A stretch of 64,000 bases of DNA from NCBI GenBank assembly GCA_002269645.1, contig NIVC01000296.1:434001-498000 (forward strand), given 5' to 3'. Shown here piece after piece: positions 5,243-61,551 of the stretch (the first letter of the stretch is position 1; each line of letters starts with the position of its first letter). Below the pieces are notes generated by a model. That model had not been told where the DNA came from. It was given only the letters and a program-made list of their open reading frames with translations, and ran no database searches. Source of the stretch: Macrostomum lignano (Eukaryota). Made by a program: the position numbers and the translations under genes.

Positions 5243-6288
5243 ACCAATACCCGTTGGAGCCGCCCTGCGTGTCGGTCCGCTCCGCCCCAGCTACGGAAGC
5301 CGAACTGGCCGCACTGGCCAACTCGCTGCGCGGCCGAGCCATGCTGCAACAGCTGGCCGCTGCCGCCTTCCCTGCGGGGACTGCTGCTCTGTCAGCTGTG
5401 AATGAAGCCGCGGAAGTCTCCAACAGCAAGCAGGCGGCCGCCCCGCCGTCCCGCCAGCGTCGCTACGAGTCCGCCCGCACCAAGCGACGCCGGCGAGCCG
5501 CCGCGGCCGCCGCAGCCGACGAGTCCAAGCAGGCGGCCAGTTTTAAGGCCAAACTGAAGCCAATGAAAACCGCCGACGATGTCTTGAAGCGAATCCAATG
5601 GGACGAGGGCATTCCGGCCCAGGACATCTTCATCGGCTATCTGGACAGGTTCAAAGGCGTAGTTGAAAAACAATTCGACGAATTCAGCTGGGAGGACATC
5701 GCCAGCGTCGACTATTACACGTTCGTGATCCCCCGGCACCGGATTTGCTACTTCAAGTACAGGCGCGCGGTCATCTGGGACAAGCGGCGCCGGCTTGACC
5801 TGGTGTTCGGCTCCACGGCCACTGCCGACGATGTCGCTGAAGGCGCCGACATCTACAAGCTCATCGCCAACTACCGGGACGAGGACTATCCGGACGGCGA
5901 GGCGTCCATGGCCTCGGCCGCGTCGTCCTCAAACTCGGAGGCTGACGAATCCGACGAATCTGATGAATCTGACGACGACGGCGTCCAGGTGCGGCTCGAC
6001 CGGCGCATCGTCGAGTCCGCAGCTCAGCGGTGCGGCGATGACGGCGACAGTCTGAGCGAAGGCGAGGACCAGGCCCAACTGTCCGGCACCGCCAAGGTCT
6101 ACTGGCGCGACCTGCTGCGCCCAAATTTCTTTGTCTGCGTCCGGGTTGTCGATCCGGCCGTCGCCTCCGCCGCTGCCGCCGTGCAGGCCAGCATCGTCCG
6201 GCAGCAGCCCGCCTTCGCCTCCTGCTGCATCCCGCCGGAGATGCTGCACTGCACCCTGGCCACCCTGCGGCTGGACTCCGCAGAGCAG
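5243..6288 (+). CDS. LENG9: LENG9-like protein, exon 2 (end of RWD, MJ1316/DUF504 domain, acidic linker, start of AKAP7-like 2H phosphoesterase)
   Basis: Acceptor ggcag| at 5242. MKTADDVLKRIQWD...IGYLDRFKG...IPRHRICYFKY...WDKRRRLDLVFGS is an MJ1316 signature. LRPNFFVCVRV and the first HxT motif (LHCTL) follow. Donor cag|gtgagg at 6289. Confidence 0.9.
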
Positions 6289-6296
6289 GTGAGGAT

Positions 6297-7880
<1,584 letters not shown>

Positions 7881-10373: not shown

Positions 10374-10445
10374 AGGTCCCACCGAGATTCGAACTCGGGT
10401 CGCAGGATTCAGAGTCCTGAGTGCTAACCGCTACACCATGGGACC
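10374..10445 (-). tRNA. tRNA-Gln (anticodon CTG)
   Basis: Reverse complement GGTCCCATGGTGTAGCGGTTAGCACTCAGGACTCTGAATCCTGCGACCCGAGTTCGAATCTCGGTGGGACCT: 72 nt, paired acceptor stem, canonical D and T loops. A T6 Pol III terminator follows (A run 10366-10371). Confidence 0.95.
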
Positions 10446-10509: not shown

Positions 10510-13500
10510 CTAGGGTAATCCCCTTCCAGTAGCTTCGGTAGTTGCCCCCTTGGTGGCTGTCGGACGCCTGGATGAGGCGCTATCCACACGGCAGCTTCAT
10601 CAACGTCGGCCTTTGGAAGCTGCGCATCCGCTCCTACGAGGCCAACCCTCCCCGTGGCAGTGAGCAGGGCGGGCGGGATGCTGAGGCGGCCGGGGCCGAG
10701 GCGCGAGCTTCTGCTCAGGCTGCCAAAGCAAACCGCCCCACCCGGCAGCACGGCCGCGCGGGTAAAGCTGAGCGCGCTGCTGAGGGCGGAGGCGACCGAC
10801 GCCCGGCGCGCAGCACCAAGCGGCGCGGCCTGTACCAGCGCGCAGCTGAGGCGGTCCGTACCGCCAAAATCACCCAGCTGAGGCGAGAGGTCGCCGGGAC
10901 GCCTAGGCGCACCAGCTCGTCCAGGGAGGGTGGGGACAACCCAGCTGGGCCCAACCCCTCGGGGCAGGGCCGACTGGAGACGGACCCGCCTGCCCAGGCG
11001 GCTGGCAGCTCCAGGGCATTGGGCCAGTCTGAAGCGGAGGACCCCATGGCTGGTAGGCGAAGGGCGGCGAACGCTGCCTATTGCCTTCCGACCAATCGGG
11101 GGCCTTTTGCTGAAGAAGAGCCCATGGACACCGGCGACCCCGACCCGAAGCTGGTGAGCGCCGAGGAGGAGGAGGAACTCCTGGCGACTGCAACACCCGA
11201 TCTGCACTGATGCCAGCGGCTACCTGGTGTCTGCAGATCAACACCCAGCACTGCGTGGCGGCGTCAGTCAACCTGATGCGCACGACAGAGCAACAGCTTC
11301 CGGGCCTGGTCTTCGTGCAGGAGCCCTGGATGACTAGGTGTAAGCCAAATAATGTGCCATCTGGCTACCACTGTTTTTGCATGGCGGACTCTCAGCCTCG
11401 CCCAAGATCTCTGGTCTTTGCTGCAAAAGCTTTTGAGGCATGGATGAGACCTGATCTCTCGACTGGGGACATCTGTGTTGTTCAAATCAATAACCTCATT
11501 CCAAATAAACCTGTGCTGGTAGCTTCTGCCTATTTCCCGGGCGATGCCCCAGTTGTCTGCGACGCGTTAGTCAACCTTACTGACTATGCTGCGTCCCATC
11601 GATTCGAGCTGCTCATTGCAGGGGATGTGAACGCACACCACCTGCATTGGGGCAACAGGAACCCCAATAACAGAGGCGAGGAGCTGCTGGCCTATGTCAG
11701 CAGCACAAACCTCAATTTCTGTAACGTGGGCAATGAACGAACGTTCAGGGGGGCCGTAGCGCAGCGGTAGCGCAGCTGCTCTGGTGTGCCAGCGACCCAG
11801 GCTCGATTCCAAGTGCAGTCACATTAATTTGGGGCTGAATTGGAATCTCGGCTTGGCTCTGCTAGTGCAATTAACGGCCTTGAGAGCCAACCCCCCCAAG
11901 GCGCAGTGAAGTGTACATGCCTAACGATAATATAAGTTACATGTAGGGCCGCTGTACACTCCTGTGTGAGTGTGTGCCTGCGTACGTATCCGCGCGCTTG
12001 TATGCCTGCTCAGGGGAGTCGGCGGAATGGGCAGTAATGCCTCTCGCCGGTTGTGCGCCAGGGTGCACACAACCCCCCTGTCTCTAAAAAAAAGAGCCAA
12101 TGCCAGAGCTTTCCGCAGTCACGGGCTGGCGAGTGTGGGACGAGGACTCGCTCTCGGACCACCGCTTTATCCGCTTTTGCATTGGGCCGACCAAGCAAAA
12201 GCCCAAGGTCACTTGGAGTCGAAACGTCAGGAATACCGATTGGGCCGCCTAATTTGGCTCGAAGCTGAGCCGCGGCCTTCGCGATCTTGTCCCCCTCCCC
12301 CCCAGTGACCTCTCTGACTGCCAGGTGGTGGATGATCTCGCCTCCTCCCTGGGCGGGGCGATCACCACTGCCTTTGAAGCAGCCTGCCCTCTAAAAGACT
12401 ACAAAGGCAAGAAATCTGCTCCCTGGTGGAACCCAGAGCTCAGGGCCCTTCGGCGCCGAGCCAGGACCCTCCAAAGGCGAGCGCTCAAAACCAAAGACCC
12501 ATCTGAAAGAGAGGCCTATACCCGTGCGATCCACGAGTTTAAGGGCCAAGTCAGAACGGCCAAGACGGCCACGTGGCGCCAATATTGCGAAGGGCTTGAG
12601 GGCTCTCGCCCCGTAGCCCGCGTGGTTAAGGCACTCACTAATGACCGTTTTTCTAAACTGTTGTGAAGAGACCTGATGGCTCGGTCACAGAGAGCTCTGA
12701 AGAGACTCTAGAGCTAATTCTCAACAGTTTCTTCCCTAAATCTCCGACTCAGCAGGGCCCGCCTGACCACACCGTGGGAGGGCAAGGCCTAGCAAAGTCT
12801 ATGATCACCAAAGACCGCATTATTAGAGCGGCAAGGTCCTTTAACCCGTTCAAGGCGCCTGGGCCCGACGGCATCTACCCAGCGTTCTTGCACGAGGCGG
12901 TAAAAAACCACCGCTTCCTGGACCTCCTCTGTCGTCTCCTCCGAGCTTGTGTGGAACTGGGCTATGTACCAGTTACGTGGAGAGAGGCCCTGGTGGTCTT
13001 TATCCCCAAGCCTGGAAAGAGCGACTACCAATCGGTGAAGGCCTTCAGGCCTATCAGCCTTACCTCCTTCTGCCTTAAGCTCCTCGAGAGACTGGTGCTT
13101 TGGCGCCTACTTTCGGTCGAGCTGAAGCGCTTCCCACTCTCGCAGAACCAGCACGCCTTTTGCGCGGGCAGGTCTACCGAGAGTGCCCTCCATGTCATTG
13201 TTGACTTCCTGGAGAGGGCCGTTCTTAACAGCGGCTTTGCCCTCTCGCTTTTCTGGACATTGAGGGGGCCTTCGACAACGTCATCTTCGAGGCCTTCTGC
13301 AGAGCCCTGGAATCCAGGGCCACGCACCATCATCACCTTGTCCGGTGGATCATGTTCATGATCCGAAACCGCACTGTTGTGGCCCACCTGAACGGCAGCT
13401 CTCTCTGGGCGCCTGTCCAGAAAGGGGGCCCCAGGGCGGAGTTCTCACCCCGTTCTCTGGAACATGGTCAAGGATGAGTTGCTTTGCAGTGATCTCCATG

Positions 13501-34319: not shown

Positions 34320-34745
34320 GATTAGATTGGCGAGAGATTAAATGGAAATGGATTAGATTGGCCATAGACTAGATGGAGATGGATTAAATTGGTTAGAGAC
34401 TAGATCGAGTTTGATTAGATTGGTTAGAGACTAGATCAAGATGGGTTAGATTCGCCGTAGACTAGATGGAGATGGATTAAATTGGTTAGAGACTAGATCG
34501 AGTTTGATTAGATTGGTTAGAGACTAGATGAAGATGGGTTAGATTGGCCATAGACTAGATCGAGATGGATTAGATTGGCCATAGACTAAATCAAAATGGA
34601 TTAGATTGGCCATAGACTAGATCGCGATGGATTGTATTGGCCATAGACTAGATAGAGATGGATTAGATTGGCCATAGACTAGATCGAGATAGATTAGATT
34701 GGCCATAGACTAAATCGAGATGGATTAGATTGCCCATAGACTAAA
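34320..34745. repeat. 31-bp intronic minisatellite (GATTAGATTGGCCATAGACTAGATCGAGATG)n
   Basis: Period 31, in STARD10 intron 2. Confidence 0.9.
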
Positions 34746-35077
34746 TCATTAAGATAAGTCGAACTTGAGATATATTGAGATTAATATATGCGTCATATTG
34801 GGTAGACAATGGATGCAAAAACGCTGCCATTGACTAAATCTTTTACTATAAGTAGTGAAACTTGGCAGCGAGTGGATAATTTTGCTGTCTTGCATCTAGT
34901 TGCCTTGATTAGCATAATCAAAGATCTGTGTTTTCTGCAACTAACATCTGCTGCTAAATTGTCGGATTCACGTGACATTCGAAAAAAGAAATAAATCAAG
35001 TCTTTGCTAATCAGCGGTCAAGCAGACACGAAAGCGACAGTCCCCGCCTATTTCGTGTAAAACAATCACCATTTCAG

Positions 35078-35221: not shown

Positions 35222-35678
35222 CCCTCCCCATGCTGTGTCTGCTCTGTCCCTTCTCCATGGTGCTGTGTCTGCTCTGTCCCCTCCCCATGCTGCTGTGTCT
35301 GCTCTGTCCCCTCCCCATGCTGCTGTGTCTGCTCTGTCCCCTCCCCATGCTGCTGTGTCTGCTCTGTCCCCTCCCCATGCTGCTGTGTCTGCTCTGTCCC
35401 CTCCCCATGCTGCTGTGTCTGCTCTGTCCCCTCCCCATGCTGCTGTGTCTGCTCTGTCCCCTCCCCATGCTGCTGTGTCTGCTCTGTCCCCTCCCCATGC
35501 TGCTGTGTCTGCTCTGTGCCCTCCCCATGCTGTGTCTGCTCTGTCCCCTCCCCATGCAGCTGTGTCTGCTCTGTCCCTTCTCCATGCTGCTGTGTCTGCT
35601 CTGTCCCCTCCCCATGCTGCTGTGTCTGCTCTGTCCCCTCCCCATGCTGCTGTGTCTGCTCTGTCCCCTCCCCATGCT
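35222..35678. repeat. 30-bp minisatellite (CCCCATGCTGCTGTGTCTGCTCTGTCCCCT)n, left arm
   Basis: Period 30 with 27-bp variants. The same array resumes at 40438 on the other side of the retrotransposon. Confidence 0.95.
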
Positions 35679-35723
35679 TCTTCTTCTTCTTCTGTTTCCC
35701 GGCACGCCGTTGACGCTTCGGCG

Positions 35724-35905
35724 TCAATATTGGCGGGGGCTCAGGCGCCCCACAGCACGTACGAACGCGATGATCCGGCCTGTCGGCGCCGATAGGGGGT
35801 CCTCGACGCCGAAGTAGCGGGCTCTGGCGGCGTCACCTCTTGGGCAGCGGCGGAGGAGGTGGTCGGCCGTGTCCACCGCGCCGCAGTCACTCCACTTTTT
35901 TGTCC
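35724..35905 (-). pseudogene. Frameshifted C-terminus of the retrotransposon ORF (CCHC-type zinc knuckle)
   Basis: Alternative frame reads KKWSDCGAVDTADHLLRRCP...[11 protein letters not shown]. Removing one A from the A6 run at ~35896-35901 fuses it to the main ORF. The expected first Cys position is Trp. Confidence 0.7.
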
Positions 35906-38900
35906 TCTTGGAGACCAAGACGTTGGCGGGTGGCGGCGCAGATGGTGGAGACGCCCGCTCTGAGTTGATTAACCAACACCTGCTCGCGTCGATTGCGGGT
36001 GGTGTCGGTGGGTGACGGCTGGTTGGTAGGCTCTGCGTCGCGGCGTCGGCGATCGCGGCGGATAGCGGCCCTCGCGGAGTCTAACGTGATGGCAGCTTCG
36101 CTCTGCGGAAGGGTAGCTGCCGTAGCCGCCGCTCTGTCAGCCGCTTCGTTGCCGGCAATCTGGCAGTGGCCAGGTACCCATCCGAAGTAGACCTTGGAGT
36201 AGGTGGCTCTCGCGATGGTGTCCCAGCAGGCGTGCCCGGCAGCATTTCGCTGGCCGGCCGGGCCGCGGGCCAGTGCCGACAGGGCGCTGAGGCTGTCAGT
36301 GAGGATGGCTATACTGTTGGCGGCGGCGTGTAGCTCCAACGAGGCACGAAGGGCGGTTGCGATAGCAGTCATTTCTGCTTGGTAGCTGCTGCAGTATGTC
36401 CCGGCCGGTGCTAGGTGCTCAGTGGTGGTACCATTATAGTGGATCACGGCCGCTCCCCCTCCGTGGGTGCAGCCTTCGTTGGCGGAGCCGTCCGTCCAGG
36501 CCGTGATCTCGAGCTCTTGGGCCGCTCTGAGGACCGCGTCGGCCGCTCTGGCGCGTTCTTCTGCCGGGGCTTTGCGGTTGACCATACTCGCCGTTGTGTC
36601 GAAGATAACTTCCGCGCTGGTGTCGCTTTCCCAGGGGGCGGCGATGATGATCTGCTCGCGCGCCATTTCATCGAGCGTTGCTACAACAGGGAGTTCTCGT
36701 GCGGCCCTCCTCCAGCATCCGCGGTGTGGCCGTTCGCGGTCTCGGGCTCCTATTCCGCTTCCCGGTTCGTCTTGCGGGTCATAGCTTCGATTTTTTAGGC
36801 GGGGTCTCGTCGAGCGGGCGGCGGTATCCACTGCCGGGCAGTCCGGCGGGAGACGAAGAATGCGCTCGCGAAGCATTGCCGCGCGTTCTATGGCGATCGA
36901 GCCGATCGGGGGGAGCCTGGCGATGTTGAGCGTGGTCTCGTTGCGGGTAGTACTGCAGCAGCCTGTGATCATCCGCGCGCATATCGACTGCTGTTGTTCG
37001 ATCATGCGTCGCGTGCTAGGCGCTGCTCCGGTTAGCCATATACCGCTTCCGTAGTCTGCACACGCTCTGATAGTGGTGATATAGGCCAAGCGGAGGATGT
37101 TTTGGTCCGCTCCACTGTTGCGGTGGGCAATGGCCGTGATTGCGCCTCTGCGCCGGGCCATGCGGGCCTTTACCTCGGCTCCATGCTTGTTGAAGGTTAG
37201 CTGATCGTCAAGGGTCAGGCCTAGGAGTCGAGGGTGCGGATCGTATTTAAGTTCGGCTCCGTTAATGTGCAGGTTGAGTCGGACTTTGCCGTTGTTCTCT
37301 TGTGGCGAGAGAGTGAAGGTCGAGTAGATGCATTTCTCGGTGCTGAGGGTGACCTTCCACCGCTTACACCATTCGGCGGCCGCATCAATGGCTGGTTGCA
37401 GGATGTCGGCGCAGTCCGTTAGCTTCCTGCTGGTGGCTAGCAGTGAGCTGTCGTCGGCGTATAGGTTAATTTTACAATCAGGGCTAGCCCTTTTTATGGT
37501 CGTCGGCAGGTCGTTGACGTACGTAGTCCACAGGGTGGGGGCGATGACGCTTCCTTGTGGAAGGCCCTCCTCGAGGACTCTTTCCCTGCTGATAGTTTGT
37601 TGCCATTTCACCCTGGCGCGGCGGTCTCTGAGGAATTTGTGCACCCAGAGGATGAATCTAGCAGGTACCGTGAGCTCGTATAGCTTAACAGTCAGAGCAG
37701 CGCGCCATACTCTGTCATAGGCCTTGCTGAAGTCGAGTAGGCATATGGCAGAGCGTTTCGCTGGTTGTTCCTCAAAACCATCAAAAATCGATTGGCAGGT
37801 GTGGGCGAGGACCTCTTCGGTGCTCCTGCCCTGGCGAAAGCCCGCCTGCTCTGGGGCCAGTTTGTGTTCACGTTCGAGGTAAGCGTTAAGTCTTTGCTGT
37901 ACGAGTTTCTCTCCGACCTTGCAGATGGAGCTCGTAAGGGCAATAGGTCGGTACGAGGACGGTGAGCTTGGCGATTTGTCCTTTTTAAGAATCGGTATGA
38001 TAGTGGCTCTTCGCCATTCGGTGGGGACTTGGTCACCCTTCCAGACTCTGTTCAGAAGGTTGAGGATCTGAAGCTCCATGGCCAGGGGGAGCTGTTTCAA
38101 CATCTCATTGCTGACCTGGTCAGGGCCAGGGCATTTACCGGATTTAAGTCTGCGGATTATGTGACGGAATTCGCCGATAGTAAAGTCTGATTCCGGGCCG
38201 TGGTTGGTGGCGGTAGCTCTGCAGTTGCGGAGGATGCGGTTAGCCTCTTTCACTATAGCCTCGTCGTTGTCTCCCTTATCTAGCCGGGATTCTTTAGCGT
38301 AAATTTGCATGAAGAGGTCGGCCTTATTCTTTTTAGTGATAGCCACTTTAGTCCTACCAGAAGTTGGGTTGGTATAACTAATGGTGGAGCTGGATGCTTG
38401 TGGTTTGGCTTCGCCTCTCATGTTGCGGAGGGTCCTGTAGAGATTGGTGTCTAGCTTCATGTCTTTACACGTTTCCGACCAGAATTCTTTTTTGGCGTTG
38501 TGAATGGTATTGCGAAGGCACGTGCGCGCTTGCGTGAGTTCCTGCATGTTTGTGTCGGATGCATCTGTTTCGACATTTTTGCGGGCTTGCTGATTTCTGT
38601 GTAGCGCTGTGTCGCATTCGTCATTCCAGAAAGGTCTCGAAATGTTCTGCGCGCCGTTCCGGGCTCCCTTCGGGATAGCTGCTGCGGCGGCTTGCAGTAT
38701 GGCTTTGCAGATACGTTTGTGTTCTGCTTCGGGGGATTCCGCCGCGTCCTGGACATGATTTTGAAGGGTCTCTTTAAATATATGCCAATTCGCCTTCTTG
38801 TACGACCACTGCGCTTGTCGTTGTTGTCGATGAGGGCGACGCGCTTGCACGCAGAAGGTGATAGGCAGATGATCGGAGCCCAGATCTTTAGCGGTGGACC

Positions 38901-40431
38901 AGGTTCTGCAAACAACTGCGCTCGGACGGCCTCGGGCCAAGGTGCAGTCCGGTGCCGAATTGCCTCCCGTCGCTGGGTTGAGTCTTGTCGCAGAGTTCCT
39001 GGTGTTGCAGATGTTGAGGTTGTTATTACTCGCCCAGGTTTCCAGTTCGGCGCCCCTGTTGTCTCCGGGCTGGAAAGGGTCCCAGTAACCGTGACAATTG
39101 AAATCTCCGCCTATGACGGTGTTGCCCGTTATCGGTATACAAGAGAGATCCGGAGTCCAGGCTTCATGTTGGCGTTGGCTACTGTGAGGGGCAGCGTACA
39201 CACTGGCGATGTTGAGGTCGCCTTGACCTTTGAGGTGGAGAGTGCACGCAGCAATATCAAGTGCGGCTTTGGATTGGTCGGGCAGGGTGGTGAAGTTGAT
39301 ATCGTTTCTGACCATGATGAGGGCGCCTCCCCGACCGGCTCTCTTGGAGCGGCGTTGCGGTGGGGTCGACGGGTTGGCTGGTCTGACCGTTACTGGATCT
39401 TTAGGTGTAGACTTGGGCAATGTTGACGGTGTGCTGGATCGGCTCGCATCTTGTGGTGTCGAGCAGCAGCTTCCGATGTATTCGTCGTTCCAGTCTTTAC
39501 TGCGCTTGAGGCCGCTACATTTCAGGTGTAGCCAGTTCCAGCACTGGTTGCAGCGGAGGCTAGTCTGGCGTTTGGTAATGATATTGTTGCAGGCTGCGCA
39601 CAGCCATGTGGAGGCGGTGTCGAGACCGGGTTGCAAGTTTATGTTTTTCGGCTTTTCAGTGGTGTTTTTGCCGAGGGGTCCCGACGTCGCTCCGGTTGTA
39701 TCGTTTGGTTGCGTCGTGGCCGTGTGGCGGTCAGGTCCGGATTGCGCGTTGTTATTTTTTTGGGTTTTATTGTGGTTGTCCGCGCCGATTTGGGCCTTCG
39801 CGTCTGGCCATGGCTCATTGCGCCGGGTGCAAGCCGATCGGGATGATCTGCAGCCTTTACACCAGTCAGTTCTGTCATCAGGCCAGCGTAGACGGCACCG
39901 TGGCCTTCGCGGGAAAGTGCGGGCGGTGCACGTGGCGCCGGGCTGGAATGGCCGGGTGGCGGTGGCAGTTTCTGTTGCGCTCTCGGTGGCGTCTGAGCCT
40001 GGGAAAATGTCAATTTTGTTGCTGCCGTCGGCACGGGCTGCTACACTATAGCCGCTCGGGGCGGTGTAGCTCGTGTCCGGCGTTAGTTTTGTCTCTTGCA
40101 GAAGGACTGCCGCAGGGCGATGCGTATCCAGCCACCTGGTTAGTTCCGGAGTCCTGGCTCTAATGCCGTTACAGTTGAACTGTAGGATAAGGAGCTCTTC
40201 CAGTGCTTTAGCATGGCGCCTGTTGCGACGGTTGCCGTGTCTGCTTCCTTTAGACGGGGGGTCGCTGCCGCCCCGTAGGCGGAGGACGTGATCGAGGTTC
40301 CCGCTTTCCCGCTGATCGGGTGGGCCGTTGTCGTAATCGTTGCTCTTCGTACGTGCTGTCCGGGGAAGGAGGGACACTTCGCCACATGGGGGATCCATGT
40401 GCTCGGGGGCGCTACGAGAAAGCGGTCCCAT
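35887..40431 (-). CDS. Retrotransposon polyprotein (~1514 aa from the first element-internal ATG): leader ending in LRLRGG, APE endonuclease with PHD insertion, reverse transcriptase, RNase H
   Basis: Endonuclease: LQFNCNG, LLQETK, GGDFNCH, GSDHLPI. RT: CPGPDQV, YRPIALTS, QAGFRQGRST, LDFSKAYD, GLPQGSVIAP, YADD (37450-37461). RNase H: WTDGS, ILTDS, WVPGHCQIAGNEAAD. The extra 540 N-terminal aa in the supplied ORF lie in the minisatellite. Confidence 0.9.
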   Translation of the reverse strand: MGPLSRSAPEHMDPPCGEVSLLPRTARTKSNDYDNGPPDQRESGNLDHVLRLRGGSDPPSKGSRHGNRRNRRHAKALEELLILQFNCNGIRARTPELTRWLDTHRPAAVLLQETKLTPDTSYTAPSGYSVAARADGSNKIDIFPGSDATESATETATATRPFQPGATCTARTFPRRPRCRLRWPDDRTDWCKGCRSSRSACTRRNEPWPDAKAQIGADNHNKTQKNNNAQSGPDRHTATTQPNDTTGATSGPLGKNTTEKPKNINLQPGLDTASTWLCAACNNIITKRQTSLRCNQCWNWLHLKCSGLKRSKDWNDEYIGSCCSTPQDASRSSTPSTLPKSTPKDPVTVRPANPSTPPQRRSKRAGRGGALIMVRNDINFTTLPDQSKAALDIAACTLHLKGQGDLNIASVYAAPHSSQRQHEAWTPDLSCIPITGNTVIGGDFNCHGYWDPFQPGDNRGAELETWASNNNLNICNTRNSATRLNPATGGNSAPDCTLARGRPSAVVCRTWSTAKDLGSDHLPITFCVQARRPHRQQRQAQWSYKKANWHIFKETLQNHVQDAAESPEAEHKRICKAILQAAAAAIPKGARNGAQNISRPFWNDECDTALHRNQQARKNVETDASDTNMQELTQARTCLRNTIHNAKKEFWSETCKDMKLDTNLYRTLRNMRGEAKPQASSSTISYTNPTSGRTKVAITKKNKADLFMQIYAKESRLDKGDNDEAIVKEANRILRNCRATATNHGPESDFTIGEFRHIIRRLKSGKCPGPDQVSNEMLKQLPLAMELQILNLLNRVWKGDQVPTEWRRATIIPILKKDKSPSSPSSYRPIALTSSICKVGEKLVQQRLNAYLEREHKLAPEQAGFRQGRSTEEVLAHTCQSIFDGFEEQPAKRSAICLLDFSKAYDRVWRAALTVKLYELTVPARFILWVHKFLRDRRARVKWQQTISRERVLEEGLPQGSVIAPTLWTTYVNDLPTTIKRASPDCKINLYADDSSLLATSRKLTDCADILQPAIDAAAEWCKRWKVTLSTEKCIYSTFTLSPQENNGKVRLNLHINGAELKYDPHPRLLGLTLDDQLTFNKHGAEVKARMARRRGAITAIAHRNSGADQNILRLAYITTIRACADYGSGIWLTGAAPSTRRMIEQQQSICARMITGCCSTTRNETTLNIARLPPIGSIAIERAAMLRERILRLPPDCPAVDTAARSTRPRLKNRSYDPQDEPGSGIGARDRERPHRGCWRRAARELPVVATLDEMAREQIIIAAPWESDTSAEVIFDTTASMVNRKAPAEERARAADAVLRAAQELEITAWTDGSANEGCTHGGGAAVIHYNGTTTEHLAPAGTYCSSYQAEMTAIATALRASLELHAAANSIAILTDSLSALSALARGPAGQRNAAGHACWDTIARATYSKVYFGWVPGHCQIAGNEAADRAAATAATLPQSEAAITLDSARAAIRRDRRRRDAEPTNQPSPTDTTRNRREQVLVNQLRAGVSTICAATRQRLGLQEDKKVE

Positions 40432-40439
40432 TGCCCACC
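40371..40439 (-). ncRNA. HDV-like self-cleaving ribozyme (predicted) at the retrotransposon 5' end
   Basis: Minus strand: P1 GG(U)GGGC/GCCCCC; J1/2 AAU; P2 GGGACC/G(U)GUCCC; P3 GCU/AGC; L3 UUCUCGU; P1.1 UC:GA; P4 CACAUGG/CCAUGUG; J4/2 GCGAA (catalytic C at 40381). Confidence 0.7.
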
Positions 40440-42045
40440 CCTCCCCATGCTGCTGTGTCTGCTGCTGCTCTGTCCCCTCCCCATGCAGCTGTGTCTGCTC
40501 TGTCCCCTCCCCATGCTGCTGTGTCTGCTCTGTCCCCTCCCCATGCTGCTGTGTCTGCTGCTGCTCTGTCCCCTCCCCATGCTGCTGTGTCTGCTCTGTG
40601 CCCTCCCCATGCTGCTGTCTGCTCTGTGCCCTCCCCATGCTGCTGTGTCTGCTCTGTCCCCTCCCCATGCTGCTGTGTCTGCTCTGTCCCCTCCCCATGC
40701 AGCTGTGTCTGCTCTGTCCCCTCCCCATGCTGCTGTGTCTGCTCTGTGCCCTCCCCATGCTGCTGTCTGCTATGTGCCCTCCCCATGCTGCTGTGTCTGC
40801 TCTGTCCCCTCCCCATGCTGCTGTGTCTGCTCTGTCCCCTCCCCATGCAGCTGTGTCTGCTCTGTCCCCTCCCCATGCTGCTGTGTCTGCTCTGTGCCCT
40901 CCCCATGCTGTGTCTGCTCTGTCCCCTCCCCATGCTGCTGTGTCTGCTCTGTGCCCTCCCCATGCTGCTGTCTGCTCTGTGCCCTCCCCATGCTGCTGTG
41001 TCTGCTGTGTCCCCTCCCCATGCAGCTGTGTCTGCTCTGTCCCCTCCCCATGCAGCTGTGTCTGCTCTGTCCCCTCCCCATGCTGCTGTGTCTGCTCTGT
41101 CCCCTCCCCATGCAGCTGTGTCTCCTCTGTCCCCTCCCCATGCTGCTGTGTCTGCTCTGTGCCCTCCCCATGCTGTGTCTGCTCTGTCCCCTCCCCATGC
41201 TGCTGTGTCTGCTCTGTGCCCTCCCCATGCTGTGTCTGCTCTGTCCCCTCCCCATGCTGCTGTGTCTGCTCTGTGCCCTCCCCATGCTGTGTCTGCTCTG
41301 TCCCCTCCCCATGCTGTGTCTGCTCTGTCCCCTCCCCATGCTGCTGTGTCTGCTCTGTGCCCTCCCCATGCTGTGTCTGCTCTGTCCCCTCCTCATGCTG
41401 CTGTGTCTGCTCTGTGCCCTCCCCATGCTGTGTCTGCTCTGTCCCCTCCCCATGCTGTGTCTGCTCTGTCCCCTCCCCATGCTGCTGTGTCTGCTCTGTG
41501 CCCTCCCCATGCTGTGTCTGCTCTGTCCCCTCCTCATGCTGCTGTGTCTGCTCTGTGCCCTCCCCATGCTGCTGTCTGCTCTGTGCCCTCCCCATGCAGC
41601 TGTGTCTGCTCTGTCCCTTCTCCATGCTGCTGTGTCTGCTCTGTCCCCTCCCCATGCTGCTGTGTCTGCTCTGTCCCCTCCCCATGCAGCTGTGTCTGCT
41701 CTGTCCCCTCCCCATGCTGTGTCTGCTCTGTCCCCTCCCCATGCTGCTGTGTCTGCTCTGTGCCCTCCCCATGCTGTGTCTGCTCTGTCCCCTCCCCATG
41801 CTGTGTCTGCTCTGTCCCTTCTCCATGCTGCTGTGTCTGCTCTGTCCCCTCCCCATGCTGCTGTGTCTGCTCTGTCCCCTCCCCATGCAGCTGTGTCTGC
41901 TCTGTGCCCTCCCCATGCTGCTGTGTCTGCTCTGTCCCCTCCCCATGCAGCTGTGTCTGCTCTGTGCCCTCCCCATGCTGCTGTGTCTGCTCTGTGCCCT
42001 CCCCATGCTGCTGTGTCTGCTCTGTCCCTTCTCCATGCTGCTGTA
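40438..42045. repeat. 30-bp minisatellite, right arm (same unit as 35222-35678)
   Basis: Directly visible; no stop codons in most frames, which produces several artefactual long ORFs. Confidence 0.95.
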
Positions 42046-56964: not shown

Positions 56965-59900
56965 ATGAGCTTAACCTTGGCGTTCCTGGGCTGCCTCATC
57001 CTGCTATCCAGCCTCACCTTGGACGCCACGGCCAACCTGGACTCGACTCCAGCCGTCTGCCAGGGCACGCATCAGTCTGAGTTCACCAGAAGCAGCTCCG
57101 TGCAGATCTTGAACTCCATCCGCAGCCAGTTGGACGGCTGCCAGATTGTGATAGGCGATTTGCACATCATGAACATCCGGGAGAAAGACTTCCAAAAAAG
57201 CAGCGCCAACTTTAGCCTGGCGTTTCTCGACTCCATCCAGGAGGTCACCGGCTGCGTCTGGATTGTCAACAGCTGCTTCAGAGTTCCCATCATCTTCCGC
57301 GGGCTTCGGGTCATCCGCGGCGCCAACTGCGACAGCGCTGTCACTATCCAGTACCTCAGCGAGTGCCGCATGCAGCCCGACGCTGTCTTCAGCCGCCTGG
57401 TATTCATCGCAAACGGCGGCGTCACGGCGGTTGGACTGCGGTCCTGTCACCTGGTTCGCGACATCAACTACACCGAGCTATTTCAGAACCCCGACAGGCA
57501 GCGCCTGATTGTCCAGCCGAAGTGCTCCGGCCCCAGCGGCTGCCACTCGGACTGTCCGGTGTGGCGGGACGGCCATCGCCACTGCTGGGGCCCCGGGCCA
57601 GACCACTGCCAGGAGCGCAGTCGCTGTTCCACACTGACCGCCAAGCAGTGCCCCGGAGGCCGCTGCTACCTGGACGGCCAGGACTCGATGACAATGCCCG
57701 AGCGCTGCTGTGCCGAGCAGTGCCTCGGCGGCTGTCACGGAACCGCCGCCAGCCACTGCATCGCCTGCGCTAGCTTCAACAAGTCGGGCGTCTGCGTCGG
57801 CGCCTGCAACCCAAGCGCCGTGTACGACTCGAGCAGCGCATCCTTCATTAAGTCGACGGAGTCCAGCAGCCTCATCCCGCTTGGCCCAGTTTGCGTCGCC
57901 AGGTGCCCGAAGACGTATTTCACTCAGGAGGGCGCCTGCGTCAGCCGCTGCTCCGAGGGCTTCGCGCCAACCAGCGACGGCGTCTGCGAGACGAACGAGG
58001 CCGGCCGGGCCTGCGAGCAGCGGAAAGGTTCGGCCATTGTATGCGACTTGGCCAACCCGCTGCTGGCCGGCGGCCGCAACTCCAGCCTGCTCTGCTCGCA
58101 CTACACTGGCGAACTGGCAATCTTTGACGACTGCATCGCGACTGACGTCCAGAAATCATACCAACCCAGGCCCGGGCTCCGGCCGCTGGCCCTGGACGAG
58201 CTGTACTTCTACCTCAGCCGCCTAGCCGTCATCCGGGGCAGCATCACCGTCGTGCTGAACAACCGGACGAACATGTCGTTCCTAAGCGGCCTCCGCCGGA
58301 TTGACAAACGGCCGGGCCACCCCAATGACGGCTACATGCTCGTGCGCTCGTCCAGCCTGCGCTTCCTCGGGCTGGCCTCGCTGAAGCACCTGGCCAGCTT
58401 TTTACTGGCCCAGCCGAAGCCTCCTCTCTGTCCAAGCCTCCTGCCAACCAGGCGCGCTTTCGACGACCGACTAGTAACGCTGCTGAATCCTAATGAGACT
58501 AGCGCCCAGTTTGACGCTGTCCGGAAGAGCAGCCTGACCGCCGACTGTCAGAGCTGTCACCCGGAGTGCGACCCCGCCTACGGCTGCTGGGGTCCCGGGC
58601 CTGACCTGTGCATCCGCTGCCGGCGTCACCGACTGCCAATCGACGAGTCCGGCGGCCGCGGAATCTGCGTGTCCGACTGCGACGGCATCGACGGCTGGTA
58701 CAACGCTGGCAAAGTTGAGGCGGTCGGCCTGCAGGTGAACGAGAGCCTCTGCAGCCGCTGTCACCCGCTGTGCAGCAGCTGCACTGGCAACAGCCAGCAG
58801 GACTGCACCAAATGCGCCCCGGAGGCCTTTGCCGAGGCCGACACCGGCGCCTGCGTGCCGGCTTGCTCGAACATCCGTCAGTTCGCCGACGCGGATCGCG
58901 TCTGCCGACCCTGCCCAGACGCCTGCACTCCGGCTATCGGCTTCGGCCAGGAGCCCACCTGCTCCGGCAACCTGTCTGCGGTCGGGCCGGGCGGCTGCAG
59001 CTACTGCTCCAAGGTGATGGAGCCTGACGAGCGCGATGGGGAGTCCGACAGCGAGCAGGCAGTCATTCGGTGCCTGAACCCGCTGGTGGCGTGTCCTGAG
59101 GGCTACCAGCTGCGTGTGCTGGAGTTTGACGAGGCCCAGCGACATTTTGCCTGGCGTCGCCGGCGACCGCACAGCTTCGTGTCAATCTGCAAGCGCTCGG
59201 ACGCCGAGGCTGAGCTCAAGAAACGCCGATCGGTCCGGGAAGCCCGACTGGCAGTGGCCTACGTTGGCGCGGGCGTCGTCGTTGTCATCACTCTGATCCT
59301 GGGCGGCATCACCTGCCGCTGTCTGCGCCAGCGAGCCGCCGCCGCGGCGGACACGGAGAAACGACGCCAACTTGGCGAGAACGGCCATCGGCGAGTGATG
59401 ATGATGGATGGCAGCTGGGATGAAGACGCCGAGCTTTTGAATGCCAACGACGGCATCGAGGGCGTCAACAGAGGGGACGACGCCGCGGGCGGCATCGAGC
59501 TTGAAGGCATCGCCGTTCTGCGCACCATCTCAGAGAACGAGCTGACCAGGGGCGCCGAAATCGGCTCGGGCGCCTTTGGCACCGTGTACCGCGGCGAGTG
59601 GCTTGCCGAAGCTTCGGTTGGCAACGGTCCGGTTCGTCAGCACGTTTCAGTGGCCATTAAAATCCTGGCAGACTCGAGCGACTGCGGCGGCAGCTGCCTG
59701 TCCAGCGAGCTACTCGCCGAGAGCCGCATAATGGCCTCCGTGCGGCACCGGCACTGCCTCAGCCTGGTCGGAGTGTGCATGACTCAGCCGCCGCAGCTCA
59801 TCAGCCGCTTCCTGCCGCTTGGCAACCTCCGCGACTTCCTGCGGGCCCGCCGCGGCACCGGGCAGCTCGGGAGCAGCCACCTGCTGCGCTTCGCGGCCCA

Positions 59901-60447
59901 GATCGCCAGCGGCATGGCCTACCTGGAGCAGCGCAGCGTCATCCACCGGGACCTCGCCTGCAGAAACGTGCTGGTCGCCTCGCCCAGGTGCGTGAAGATC
60001 ACTGATTTCGGCCTGGCCCGCCTCATGGATAATCCCAACGAAGAGTACCAGGCCTCCGGTGGCAAGCTGCCTGTGAAGTGGCTGGCCCTCGAGTGCCTCG
60101 TCTGCCGGCGGTTCTCTCACAAATCCGACGTCTGGGCCTACGGGGTGACGCTCTGGGAGATCTTTATGTTCGGCGAGCCGCCCTACGCCAACGTGAGGCC
60201 GGTTGACCTCGCCGACTACCTGGAGAAAGGCGAACGTCTGCCGCAGCCGCCTATCTGCACCCTCGACGTGTACATCCTCATGATCAAATGCTGGATGCTG
60301 AACGAGTCCCAGCGGCCCAGCTTCGACCAGCTCGAGTCCAGCTTCCGCAAGATGTGCGACTCTCCGGGGCGCTACGTCTACATCAAAGGCGACAGGTTCG
60401 CGGCTGGTCGAAGGCCTCATCGCGACGACGGCAACTGCGGAGGAGGC

Positions 60448-60478
<31 letters not shown>

Positions 60479-60969
60479 ATGGCTGCAACGGGAGTTCCGG
60501 GTCCTCACCGACTGGCAGCGGCAGCAGCAGCTCGCAGGAGGCGCACCACGCGCCCGATGGCAGCGCCGGAGACGGTCTCGACGATGGCGAATATTCGCCT
60601 CTGGAGGTCAACGAGGAGGTGAACGTTGACGAGGTGTTCAGAGTGTCGCCTCCGCCGCTGGCTTCCGCCGAAACCGGCAGCACTGAGGTCGACGCCGACG
60701 CCGCCGCCTACGGCAACGCAGCGGCTATGGCGAATCTTGGACCGATGAAGCACGGCGCAGTCCCTGAGAAGCTCGTGAACAACAAGTACTGCAGCGACCC
60801 GAGCTCCGACCAAGAGCTGCAAGACGACTACCTGAGGCCCAACTGCTCGACACAGGCCAGCCTGGCTACCGCGGTGTACAATCCCGAGTACTTCTTCAAC
60901 GCGTCTCGTGCCGCGACGCCGAAGCCGCCGCCGCCTCAACAGGTGGGACAGACTGTGGATTCCCAATGA
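56965..60969 (+). CDS. EGFR: EGFR/ErbB-family receptor tyrosine kinase (1334 aa, intronless)
   Basis: Signal peptide, receptor-L domain (CQGT...GCQIVIGDLHI), furin-like Cys-rich repeats (CWGPGPDHC, CHPEC..GCWGPGPDLC) and a TM helix. Kinase motifs IGSGAFGTVYRG, VAIK, HRDLACRN, DFGLARL and GGKLPVKWLALE. Tail tyrosines (NNKY, DDYL, NPEY). Confidence 0.95.
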
Positions 60970-61109: not shown

Positions 61110-61551
61110 CTAGAATGACTGGATGGGCCACTCAGGCATATATACTCGTACTTAGCAAAACAGCTTTCTACTTTCAGTTCAGTAGCAAAGAAGAATACAT
61201 AAGCTATTTTATAAAAATAAAGGCAGCTGAAATTACTTTGATAAGTTTAGAAGCCAAGCTTGCAGGCGTAAACAACTTGCTAATTGGTTCAGCAGTAATG
61301 TACATTAGCCAGCGCCACTGAAATGTACATGGCAGCTTTAGGCTGGAATTCCGAGAAAGGCAATAAAATTGGGGGCGGGGCGGGGGGTAGTGTGGAAAGG
61401 CCGGTTTAAACTGGAGGTGGGTAAGAGCCAATAAATGAGCCTTAGCTTTAAAAATACATTAAAATGCTTCTGTTTAACTTCACTACTGAACTGAAAGTAG
61501 CTTACACGCAAATGTGCTGAGTGGCCCATCTAGCTATTCTAGTATCTGTGG
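61110..61551 (+). mobile_element. MITE family A, copy 3
   Basis: ctagaatgactggatgggccactcag ... ctgagtggcccatctagctattctag; body matches copies 1 and 2. Confidence 0.85.

Follow-up and report, generated by a model that had tools for sequence, protein, structure and literature searches.

How LINE-like elements that have only one open reading frame (ORF) produce their enzymes is poorly understood: many are promoterless, are co-transcribed with the host and start translation inside a structured 5' RNA. The one known answer is the 2A ("StopGo") peptide; a 2006 study by Heras reportedly deals with its presence in the N-terminal region of single-ORF, APE-type retrotransposons without long terminal repeats (non-LTR). 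In L1Tc/Ingi, CR1, L2, Rex1 and Crack, 2A is a short linear signal between a dispensable leader and the endonuclease-reverse transcriptase of the single ORF (PMC3708506); some relatives of the element described here have a basic linker or a PHD finger after it. Odon et al. 2013 (PMC3708506) and a companion review (PMC3894237) describe N-terminal 2A in such elements, consistent with the relatives found here, and make no mention of ubiquitin. Here we analysed a 64,000-nucleotide (nt) stretch of flatworm DNA (contig NIVC01000296.1; this whole stretch is called the window). A non-LTR retrotransposon on its minus strand carries, likewise as a short linear signal between leader and endonuclease, a conserved motif that reads as the tail of ubiquitin. 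A 2A acts co-translationally in the ribosome and needs D(V/I)ExNPGP; the tail would need a trans-acting host protease and would work post-translationally, which would make it a second, mechanistically different answer to the same problem.

L1Tc of Trypanosoma cruzi shares the order of parts with the window element: a 5' hepatitis delta virus (HDV)-like ribozyme/Pr77, 2A, endonuclease, reverse transcriptase, RNase H and a C-terminal zinc motif (PMC4035085, PMC6765202). A trypanosomatid element (P0005) is also among the detectable homologues. The window element differs from L1Tc by its ubiquitin tail in place of 2A, by a ribozyme that is only putative, by a large insertion in the endonuclease with a Cys knuckle and a PHD finger, and by its flatworm host.

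On the protein side, the nearest counterparts are ubiquitin fusions (polyubiquitin, UBA52/RPS27A and the laboratory ubiquitin-fusion technique), in which ...LRLRGG directly precedes the cargo, as in the window. Host deubiquitinases cut them after GG and leave an exact N-terminus, with any next residue except Pro. These fusions hold the whole 76-residue fold, whereas the window element has about 11 tail residues and the fold is undetectable. In cytopathogenic pestivirus genomes, insertions of host ubiquitin-coding sequence create a processing site upstream of NS3, at which host ubiquitin hydrolases free the N-terminus of the replicase-type protein; as a rule they span a whole or almost whole ubiquitin monomer, if not more than one, while the window element keeps only the tail, as a fixed feature conserved in a retrotransposon clade. 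For viral papain-like/USP-fold proteases, a bare L-x-G-G tail that no ubiquitin fold precedes is enough for efficient cutting after it, but there the protease is encoded by the virus, and the window element encodes no protease domain. N-terminal release signals in single-ORF non-LTR elements and processing of ubiquitin fusions by host deubiquitinases are both known already; the tail-only form in a retrotransposon clade is new. Our literature search returned no published report of a ubiquitin-tail motif in retrotransposons, and no paper containing both 'LRLRGG' and 'retrotransposon'.

Minus-strand translation from the ATG at 40431, from which all residues are numbered, gives ...NDYDNGPPDQRESGNLDHVLRLRGGSDPPSKGSRHGNRRNRRHAKALEELLILQFNCNG. 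A first-pass annotation of the DNA had placed LDHVLRLRGG at codons 46-55; direct translation confirms it, at 40296..40267 (minus strand), and its identity to the ubiquitin end LHLVLRLRGG is indeed 8 out of 10. The motif is followed by SDPP, a basic stretch (SKGSRHGNRRNRRH) and then LLILQFNCNG, the first strand of the AP-endonuclease, again as annotated. In a six-frame scan it is the sole match to the ubiquitin tail with at least 8 of 10 identities across the window, against a chance expectation of 0.015 per window estimated from 200 block-shuffled windows. In the remainder of the window we found neither a gene nor a pseudogene for ubiquitin that could have been a local donor. When the 79-residue leader is compared with all PDB sequences (phmmer), the only match is ubiquitin, by its tail only (E=0.9); for the leader of a related M. 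lignano element it is polyubiquitin (E=0.08). Both matches are confined to approximately ubiquitin residues 62-76. As neither E-value is significant individually, the case rests on conservation among relatives, which together with the shuffling result leads us to take the motif as non-random.

Two homologue sets were used. A word-indexed search returned one close relative, P0001 (a UniParc entry), and a profile search of 1.84 billion representative proteins returned 5447 endonuclease relatives, over the best 150 of which motif and 2A counts were taken. Among these 150, one further protein carries the motif ahead of the endonuclease: P0022, which is, like its cluster mates and P0016, a Macrostomum lignano protein. 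The N-terminus of P0016 is missing; readable N-termini in this clade come from three lineages: the window, P0022/P0167 and P0001. All three have N-L-x-x-V-(L/M)-R-L-R-G-G in the same place, with N, L, V, R, L, R, G and G invariant, at an overall identity between lineages of 40-47%. From the motif to the endonuclease start they read ..ESGNLDHVLRLRGGSDPPSKGSRHGNRRNRRHAKALEELLILQFNCNG (window), ..DNANLHRVLRLRGGDSNVTASPRQTRSSKKRGRGHRSGSELQVLQFNCNG (P0022/P0167; motif segment NLHRVLRLRGGDS) and ..NSENLLSVMRLRGGNSDISVHRRRPRRRHRRAASRKAEPVQELLVQFNCNG (P0001; motif segment NLLSVMRLRGGNSD). The motifs of P0001 and P0022/P0167 lie 27-35 residues before the QFNCNG endonuclease start, and that of P0022, LHRVLRLRGG, is identical to the ubiquitin tail at 9 of 10 positions. 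Outside the motif, both flanks are unalignable among the three lineages until the endonuclease begins.

Projected onto ubiquitin, the invariant residues fall on V70-G76 and on L67, while the equivalents of H68 and of the buried L69 vary. Ubiquitin residues 71-76 are the stretch that occupies the deubiquitinase cleft, and variability at the H68 and L69 equivalents is what one expects from a linear motif that binds in a cleft and has no folded core. The residue that follows GG is Ser in the window (VLRLRGG-S), Asp in P0022 (VLRLRGG-D) and Asn in P0001 (VMRLRGG-N); in none of them is it Pro, which directly after GG blocks deubiquitinases.

At the DNA level, the comparison involves one relative only, the M. 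lignano element at loci L001/L002. Of the 11 motif residues, the window and L002 have 9 in common, and for 5 of these the two use different synonymous codons; in the flanks, the same residue is found in 0 of 6 codons upstream and 0 of 5 downstream. Synonymous changes inside the motif amid fully divergent flanks argue for selection on the peptide rather than on the RNA, and the motif peptide is under purifying selection. The annotation would have been refuted by a motif not conserved among family members, but all three readable lineages keep it. The codon pattern speaks against the motif being a neutral relic, with no present function, left by a template switch onto ubiquitin mRNA or by an ancestor that was fused to complete ubiquitin. 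Such a relic would decay at the same rate as its flanks, whereas the 11-residue block keeps 9 identities and 5 synonymous substitutions next to flanks with none. A pairwise alignment does hint at a ubiquitin remnant upstream (GPPDQ against ubiquitin GIPPDQQ); the hint is weak, being matched or beaten by 83 of 5000 shuffles, and we regard a relic as very improbable.

It could also be asked whether the likeness to ubiquitin is incidental, the block being an arginine-rich, RGG-type nucleic-acid-binding or nuclear-import region that runs into the basic linker. A K/R/H-rich stretch follows RLRGG in all three lineages, and many nucleic-acid-binding proteins have RGG boxes and a basic N-terminal region. 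The invariant N, L, V and L positions would be superfluous for such a function, however, and the sequence of the basic linker itself is not conserved: the linkers of the relatives (26-28 residues) are basic too, but unlike in sequence. The matches to ubiquitin at 8 and 9 of 10 positions, with ubiquitin as the sole match in PDB, are moreover hard to call coincidence. We consider this alternative improbable.

Further searches did not enlarge the clade. With word-indexed homologue searches limited to the leader region, the window leader returned nothing new and the P0022 leader only itself; a metagenome scan with a leader plus endonuclease-N profile gave 5 loci, in all of which the endonuclease comes after a PHD finger, and a ubiquitin tail is absent from each. 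A leech protein (P0118, Helobdella) that starts with MALEQWLLRGGND about 60 residues before its endonuclease was judged a chance resemblance, with a stop codon 8 codons upstream and no other similarity.

The annotation had also stated that related elements place a 2A peptide at the equivalent position, and rightly so. A canonical 2A, D[VI]ExNPGP, is present in the N-terminal part of 51 of the 150 best endonuclease relatives, an arrangement also described in PMC3708506. It is usually followed by a PHD finger and then the endonuclease; in P0088, P0096, P0093 and P0072, 2A is followed by a basic linker with the endonuclease directly after. When a tree is built with database relatives from the C-terminal endonuclease half, the window element, P0167, P0001 and P0016 form one clade (Shimodaira-Hasegawa-like support 96), nested in a radiation where 41 of 67 scorable sequences have 2A. 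The ubiquitin-tail motif occupies in this clade the place held by 2A in related elements.

Traces of an earlier 2A may still be visible. The nearest full-length outgroup, L011 (ENA assembly ERZ25071366, 4400-8200), is 37-45% identical over the whole ORF; it reads MLIMTGIEPKPGP, with a degenerate 2A, GIEPKPGP (N to K), then an N-terminal PHD finger and an undivided endonuclease. A similar NKPGP is seen in the relative P0017, and the 2A-like sequences of both may be inactivated. The window ORF is free of NPGP throughout, as is the satellite sequence in frame with it upstream. Residues 254-263 (39643-39672, minus strand), which immediately precede the internal PHD finger, read KNINLQPGLD, and MAFFT aligns NINLQPGL with the relatives' IESNPGP / GDIETNPGP 2A, I, P and G being kept; it may be a decayed 2A. 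The PHD finger itself, N-terminal after 2A in most relatives, lies in the ubiquitin-tail clade within an insertion in an endonuclease loop, beside a Cys knuckle. This points to a move of the old 2A-PHD module into the endonuclease loop, where an active 2A would not be tolerated. A new N-terminus with the ubiquitin tail would then have taken over from 2A.

A complete ubiquitin fold does not accompany the tail, in agreement with a caveat of the first-pass annotation. In the window only 45 residues precede the motif; in the M. lignano relative there are 77, Cys-rich and unlike ubiquitin. Pfam found no match in the isolated leaders of the window and P0001 even at E<=10. With the tail removed, the wider similarity of the leaders to the ubiquitin body was not significant, its score being reached in 83 of 5000 shuffles for the window and 1117 of 5000 for P0001; a ubiquitin-like pattern that we had seen by eye in the P0001 leader was dropped on this result. 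AlphaFold on the P0001 leader alone was uninformative (predicted local distance difference test, pLDDT, of 31). For window residues 1-545, modelled with a 20-sequence alignment, it builds a confident endonuclease core despite the 230-residue insertion: pLDDT exceeds 90 in both endonuclease halves and is about 80 in the inserted finger, and it falls to 36-51 in residues 1-78, which include the motif. The motif is therefore predicted to lie in a flexible extension, outside the endonuclease fold.

The best explanation, although we regard it as an even call, is that a host ubiquitin-specific protease would cut the motif after GG, shedding the leader and leaving a defined basic N-terminus, as a functional equivalent of 2A. 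Cleavage by a host deubiquitinase to a uniform N-terminus had been suggested in the first-pass annotation, and the present results support it in part. A short, flexible, poorly conserved leader ending in N-L-x-x-V-L-R-L-R-G-G would be translated ahead of the endonuclease-reverse transcriptase protein; its source could be a host ORF lying upstream, an alternative or non-AUG start, or codons that overlap the structured 5' RNA. Post-translational cleavage after GG would remove whatever leader had been made and expose Ser, Asp or Asn, followed by the basic linker, on the endonuclease-reverse transcriptase protein. Pfam finds no protease domain in the window ORF, so any cleavage must be made by the host. 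The leader contains a second in-frame ATG, at codon 12, and its codons overlap the structured 5' RNA. As to the motif's origin, capture from the 3' end of a ubiquitin coding unit, or convergence on such an end, is most likely.

A bolder form of this proposal holds that, after the clade discarded the ancestral 2A, the bare, foldless 11-residue tail became an efficient host-deubiquitinase site in vivo that sets an N-terminal Ser, Asp or Asn, and that the host ubiquitin system would thus both shed the leader and tune the half-life of the protein. Asp and Asn N-termini are destabilising under the Arg/N-degron rule. We put this forward tentatively and find it rather doubtful. Either version, if true, would show a mobile element that took over a piece of a host gene to process its own protein, and a foldless tail would be a physiological, natural deubiquitinase site, with a bearing on deubiquitinase specificity and on the design of a compact "cut-here" tag.

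The insertion context of the relative in M. lignano, a laboratory model in which transgenesis exists, illustrates where an N-terminal release site would be useful. L001 and L002 are filled sites, 99.4% identical, and L003 is a paralogous empty site with about 90% identity. With a slash at the junction, the empty site reads ...CAGCAGTCGCTAATG/CAGCAGCGC... and the filled site ...TCGCTAATG/TGGGACCGAACGG...; at the 3' junction of L001/L002, 534 bp of the host are absent. The insertion is in frame with the host ORF, within a coding exon of a poly-Q/C2H2 zinc-finger gene, and the gene model P0167 is a host-element fusion as a result of this insertion. Elsewhere in the window, the 60 bp at 61167-61226 resemble short repeats found in all three of L001-L003, with 83-87% identity, a hint that the window stems from a related genome.

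Several points weigh against cleavage as the function of the motif. The in-frame insertion is a single case, with a chance probability of one in three, and the L001/L002 copy is without its 3' part from approximately reverse transcriptase residue 979. The window copy is frameshifted near an A-run at about 35895, which leaves the Cys/His knuckle SDCGAVDTADHLLRRCPRG out of frame, with its first Cys replaced; the knuckle is in frame in P0001, and the window copy is probably not fully functional. Only three lineages are known, and those with a named source all come from one host species; all three seem to belong to a single host genus. Upstream of the motif, neither Pfam nor phmmer against PDB finds the complete beta-grasp fold of about 76 residues, and cellular deubiquitinases cut tail-only peptides orders of magnitude worse than folded ubiquitin fusions. 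Finally, strict conservation is equally compatible with a docking motif that is never cut.

In that last case, the motif would be an uncleaved mimic of the ubiquitin tail, a docking or decoy peptide that recruits a ubiquitin-specific protease or another tail-binding factor; it could keep the protein deubiquitinated and stable, or disturb host ubiquitin signalling. Docking accounts equally well for the conservation pattern and the flexible, exposed location, and it avoids the problem of tail-only peptides being poor deubiquitinase substrates. Ties between such elements and the ubiquitin system have a precedent in a 2026 preprint, which reports deubiquitinase domains (Josephin, OTU) fused to some non-LTR ORF2 proteins (PMC13405545). 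Docking leaves unexplained, however, why the motif sits exactly at the 2A position ahead of a similar basic linker, and why everything upstream of it varies freely, since a docking motif could be anywhere in the protein. We think this role unlikely, if deserving of attention, and prefer cleavage after GG.

The first-pass annotation described the leader as overlapping a ribozyme, a claim that stands in part. Rfam found no HDV-like or other ribozyme in the 5' regions of the window and M. lignano elements, at the gathering threshold or at E<=10, and the fold energy is unremarkable (z = -1.0). In an alignment that sets the window 5' end against approximately nt 78 of the M. lignano element, the regions nevertheless share P2/P3/P4/J4-2-like features. 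P2 is GGGAC/GUCCC in the window and GCGAC/GUCGC in M. lignano, a compensatory G-C to C-G change; P3 is CGC/GCG and UGC/GCG, respectively, and L3 has 9 nt in both. P4 is a 7-bp hairpin in the window and a 5-bp hairpin of other sequence at the same place in M. lignano, and J4/2 contains CGAA in both (GCGAA and ACGAA). P1 could not be assigned: no convincing 6-7 bp helix was found, and scanning with a permissive HDV descriptor left 104 and 70 alternatives, none of them clear. An HDV-like ribozyme at the 5' end of the element is a plausible candidate. If real, it would account for a leader whose beginning is kept as RNA and not as protein, and it would fit the ribozyme plus 2A layout of L1Tc (PMC4035085, PMC6765202).

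The element is a single-ORF, APE-type non-LTR retrotransposon with RNase H, of the I/Ingi-like superfamily; Pfam places endonuclease, reverse transcriptase and RNase H in that order within one ORF. Nearly intact, it is the only copy in the window. Its features are listed in the table below.

Table. Features of the ubiquitin-tail retrotransposon and of the satellite around it in the window, with the sites of its M. lignano relative.
Feature	Position	Strand	Basis
Whole non-LTR retrotransposon copy, 4760 bp	35678..40437	-	borders from 13-bp target-site duplication
Target-site duplication, 5' copy, GCATGGGGAGGGG	40438..40450	-	read directly; joined-flank check
Target-site duplication, 3' copy, GCATGGGGAGGGG	35665..35677	-	read directly; joined-flank check
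Possible HDV-like ribozyme core	40368..40437	-	P2/P3/L3/P4/J4-2 features aligned with M. lignano 5' region
Main ORF, 1514 residues	40431..35887, stop at 35887-35889	-	translation
Variable leader, residues 1-44	40300..40431	-	protein sequence not conserved with relatives; pLDDT 36-48
Ubiquitin-tail block NLDHVLRLRGG, residues 45-55	40267..40299	-	invariant residues in three lineages, codon comparison, PDB match
Basic linker SDPPSKGSRHGNRRNRRHAKALEE, residues 56-79	40195..40266	-	9 of 24 residues K/R/H
AP-endonuclease N-terminal part, residues 80-135 (LLILQFNCNG..LLQETKL..GY)	40027..40194	-	Pfam Exo_endo_phos residues 83-128; pLDDT >90
Endonuclease-loop insertion, residues 136-365	39337..40026	-	230 residues, Cys knuckle and PHD-type finger
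Cys knuckle C179, C191, C194, C201 (CxRxPx5WCxGCx6C, residues 179-201)	39808..39903	-	common to P0001, P0020-23, P0026
PHD-type finger, about residues 264-321	39469..39642	-	weak PHD/C1_2 matches; aligns with relatives' N-terminal PHD; pLDDT about 80
AP-endonuclease C-terminal part, residues 366-530	38842..39336	-	Pfam Exo_endo_phos_2 residues 407-524; pLDDT >90
Reverse transcriptase, residues 815-1037	37321..37989	-	Pfam RVT_1, E=2e-34
RNase H, residues 1309-1439	36115..36507	-	Pfam RNase_H, E=2e-11
C-terminal Cys/His knuckle, out of frame	35723..35912	-	shifted frame SDCGAVDTADHLLRRCPRGDAAR matches P0001 CPDCGARDTEQHILFDCPRGFAAR
3' tail A(GAA)5	35678..35693	-	read directly
Upstream flank, 30-bp satellite, about 54 copies	40438..42044	.	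repeat scan
Downstream flank, identical 30-bp satellite, about 15 copies	35231..35677	.	repeat scan
Related element in M. lignano, filled sites	L001 1911-4930; L002 6835-9785		compared with empty L003 6868-7410

The copy is inserted within the 30-bp satellite, and joining the two flanks restores a perfect satellite unit. Its limits, 40437..35678, follow from the target-site duplication and place the 5' end only 6 nt ahead of the first ATG. The satellite sequence GGGGAGGGG resembles CAGGAGGG within the 5' region of the M. lignano element, so that the window copy could begin a few bases beyond the 5' border given here. The satellite unit, GCATGGGGAGGGGACAGAGCAGACACAGCA, has stop codons in none of its six frames, and ORFs of 400-600 residues or more span the satellite on both strands; for this reason we rejected a meaningful open frame that would extend upstream of the element through the satellite. 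The satellite may be a host gene's coding repeat of a decapeptide or just a minisatellite. A separate 31-bp tandem repeat of about 14 copies (34320-34747) lies just beyond the flanking satellite.

The window has other features as well. A second, unrelated non-LTR retrotransposon is present in fragments at 11210-13361 (plus strand), with endonuclease and reverse transcriptase pieces in several frames; neither 2A nor a ubiquitin tail was seen in it. At 56965-60969 (plus strand), an uninterrupted ORF of 1334 residues has the set of domains of an epidermal growth factor (EGF)-receptor-type tyrosine kinase, namely a Receptor L domain, a Furin-like region, growth factor receptor domain IV and a tyrosine kinase; it marks the host as a metazoan, and the gene is seemingly intronless. 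An ORF at 5254-6450 (plus strand) combines an MJ1316 RNA cyclic-end recognition domain with an AKAP7-type 2'-5' RNA ligase-like domain, and a tRNA-Gln gene with a CTG anticodon (65.9 bits) lies at 10374-10445 (minus strand).

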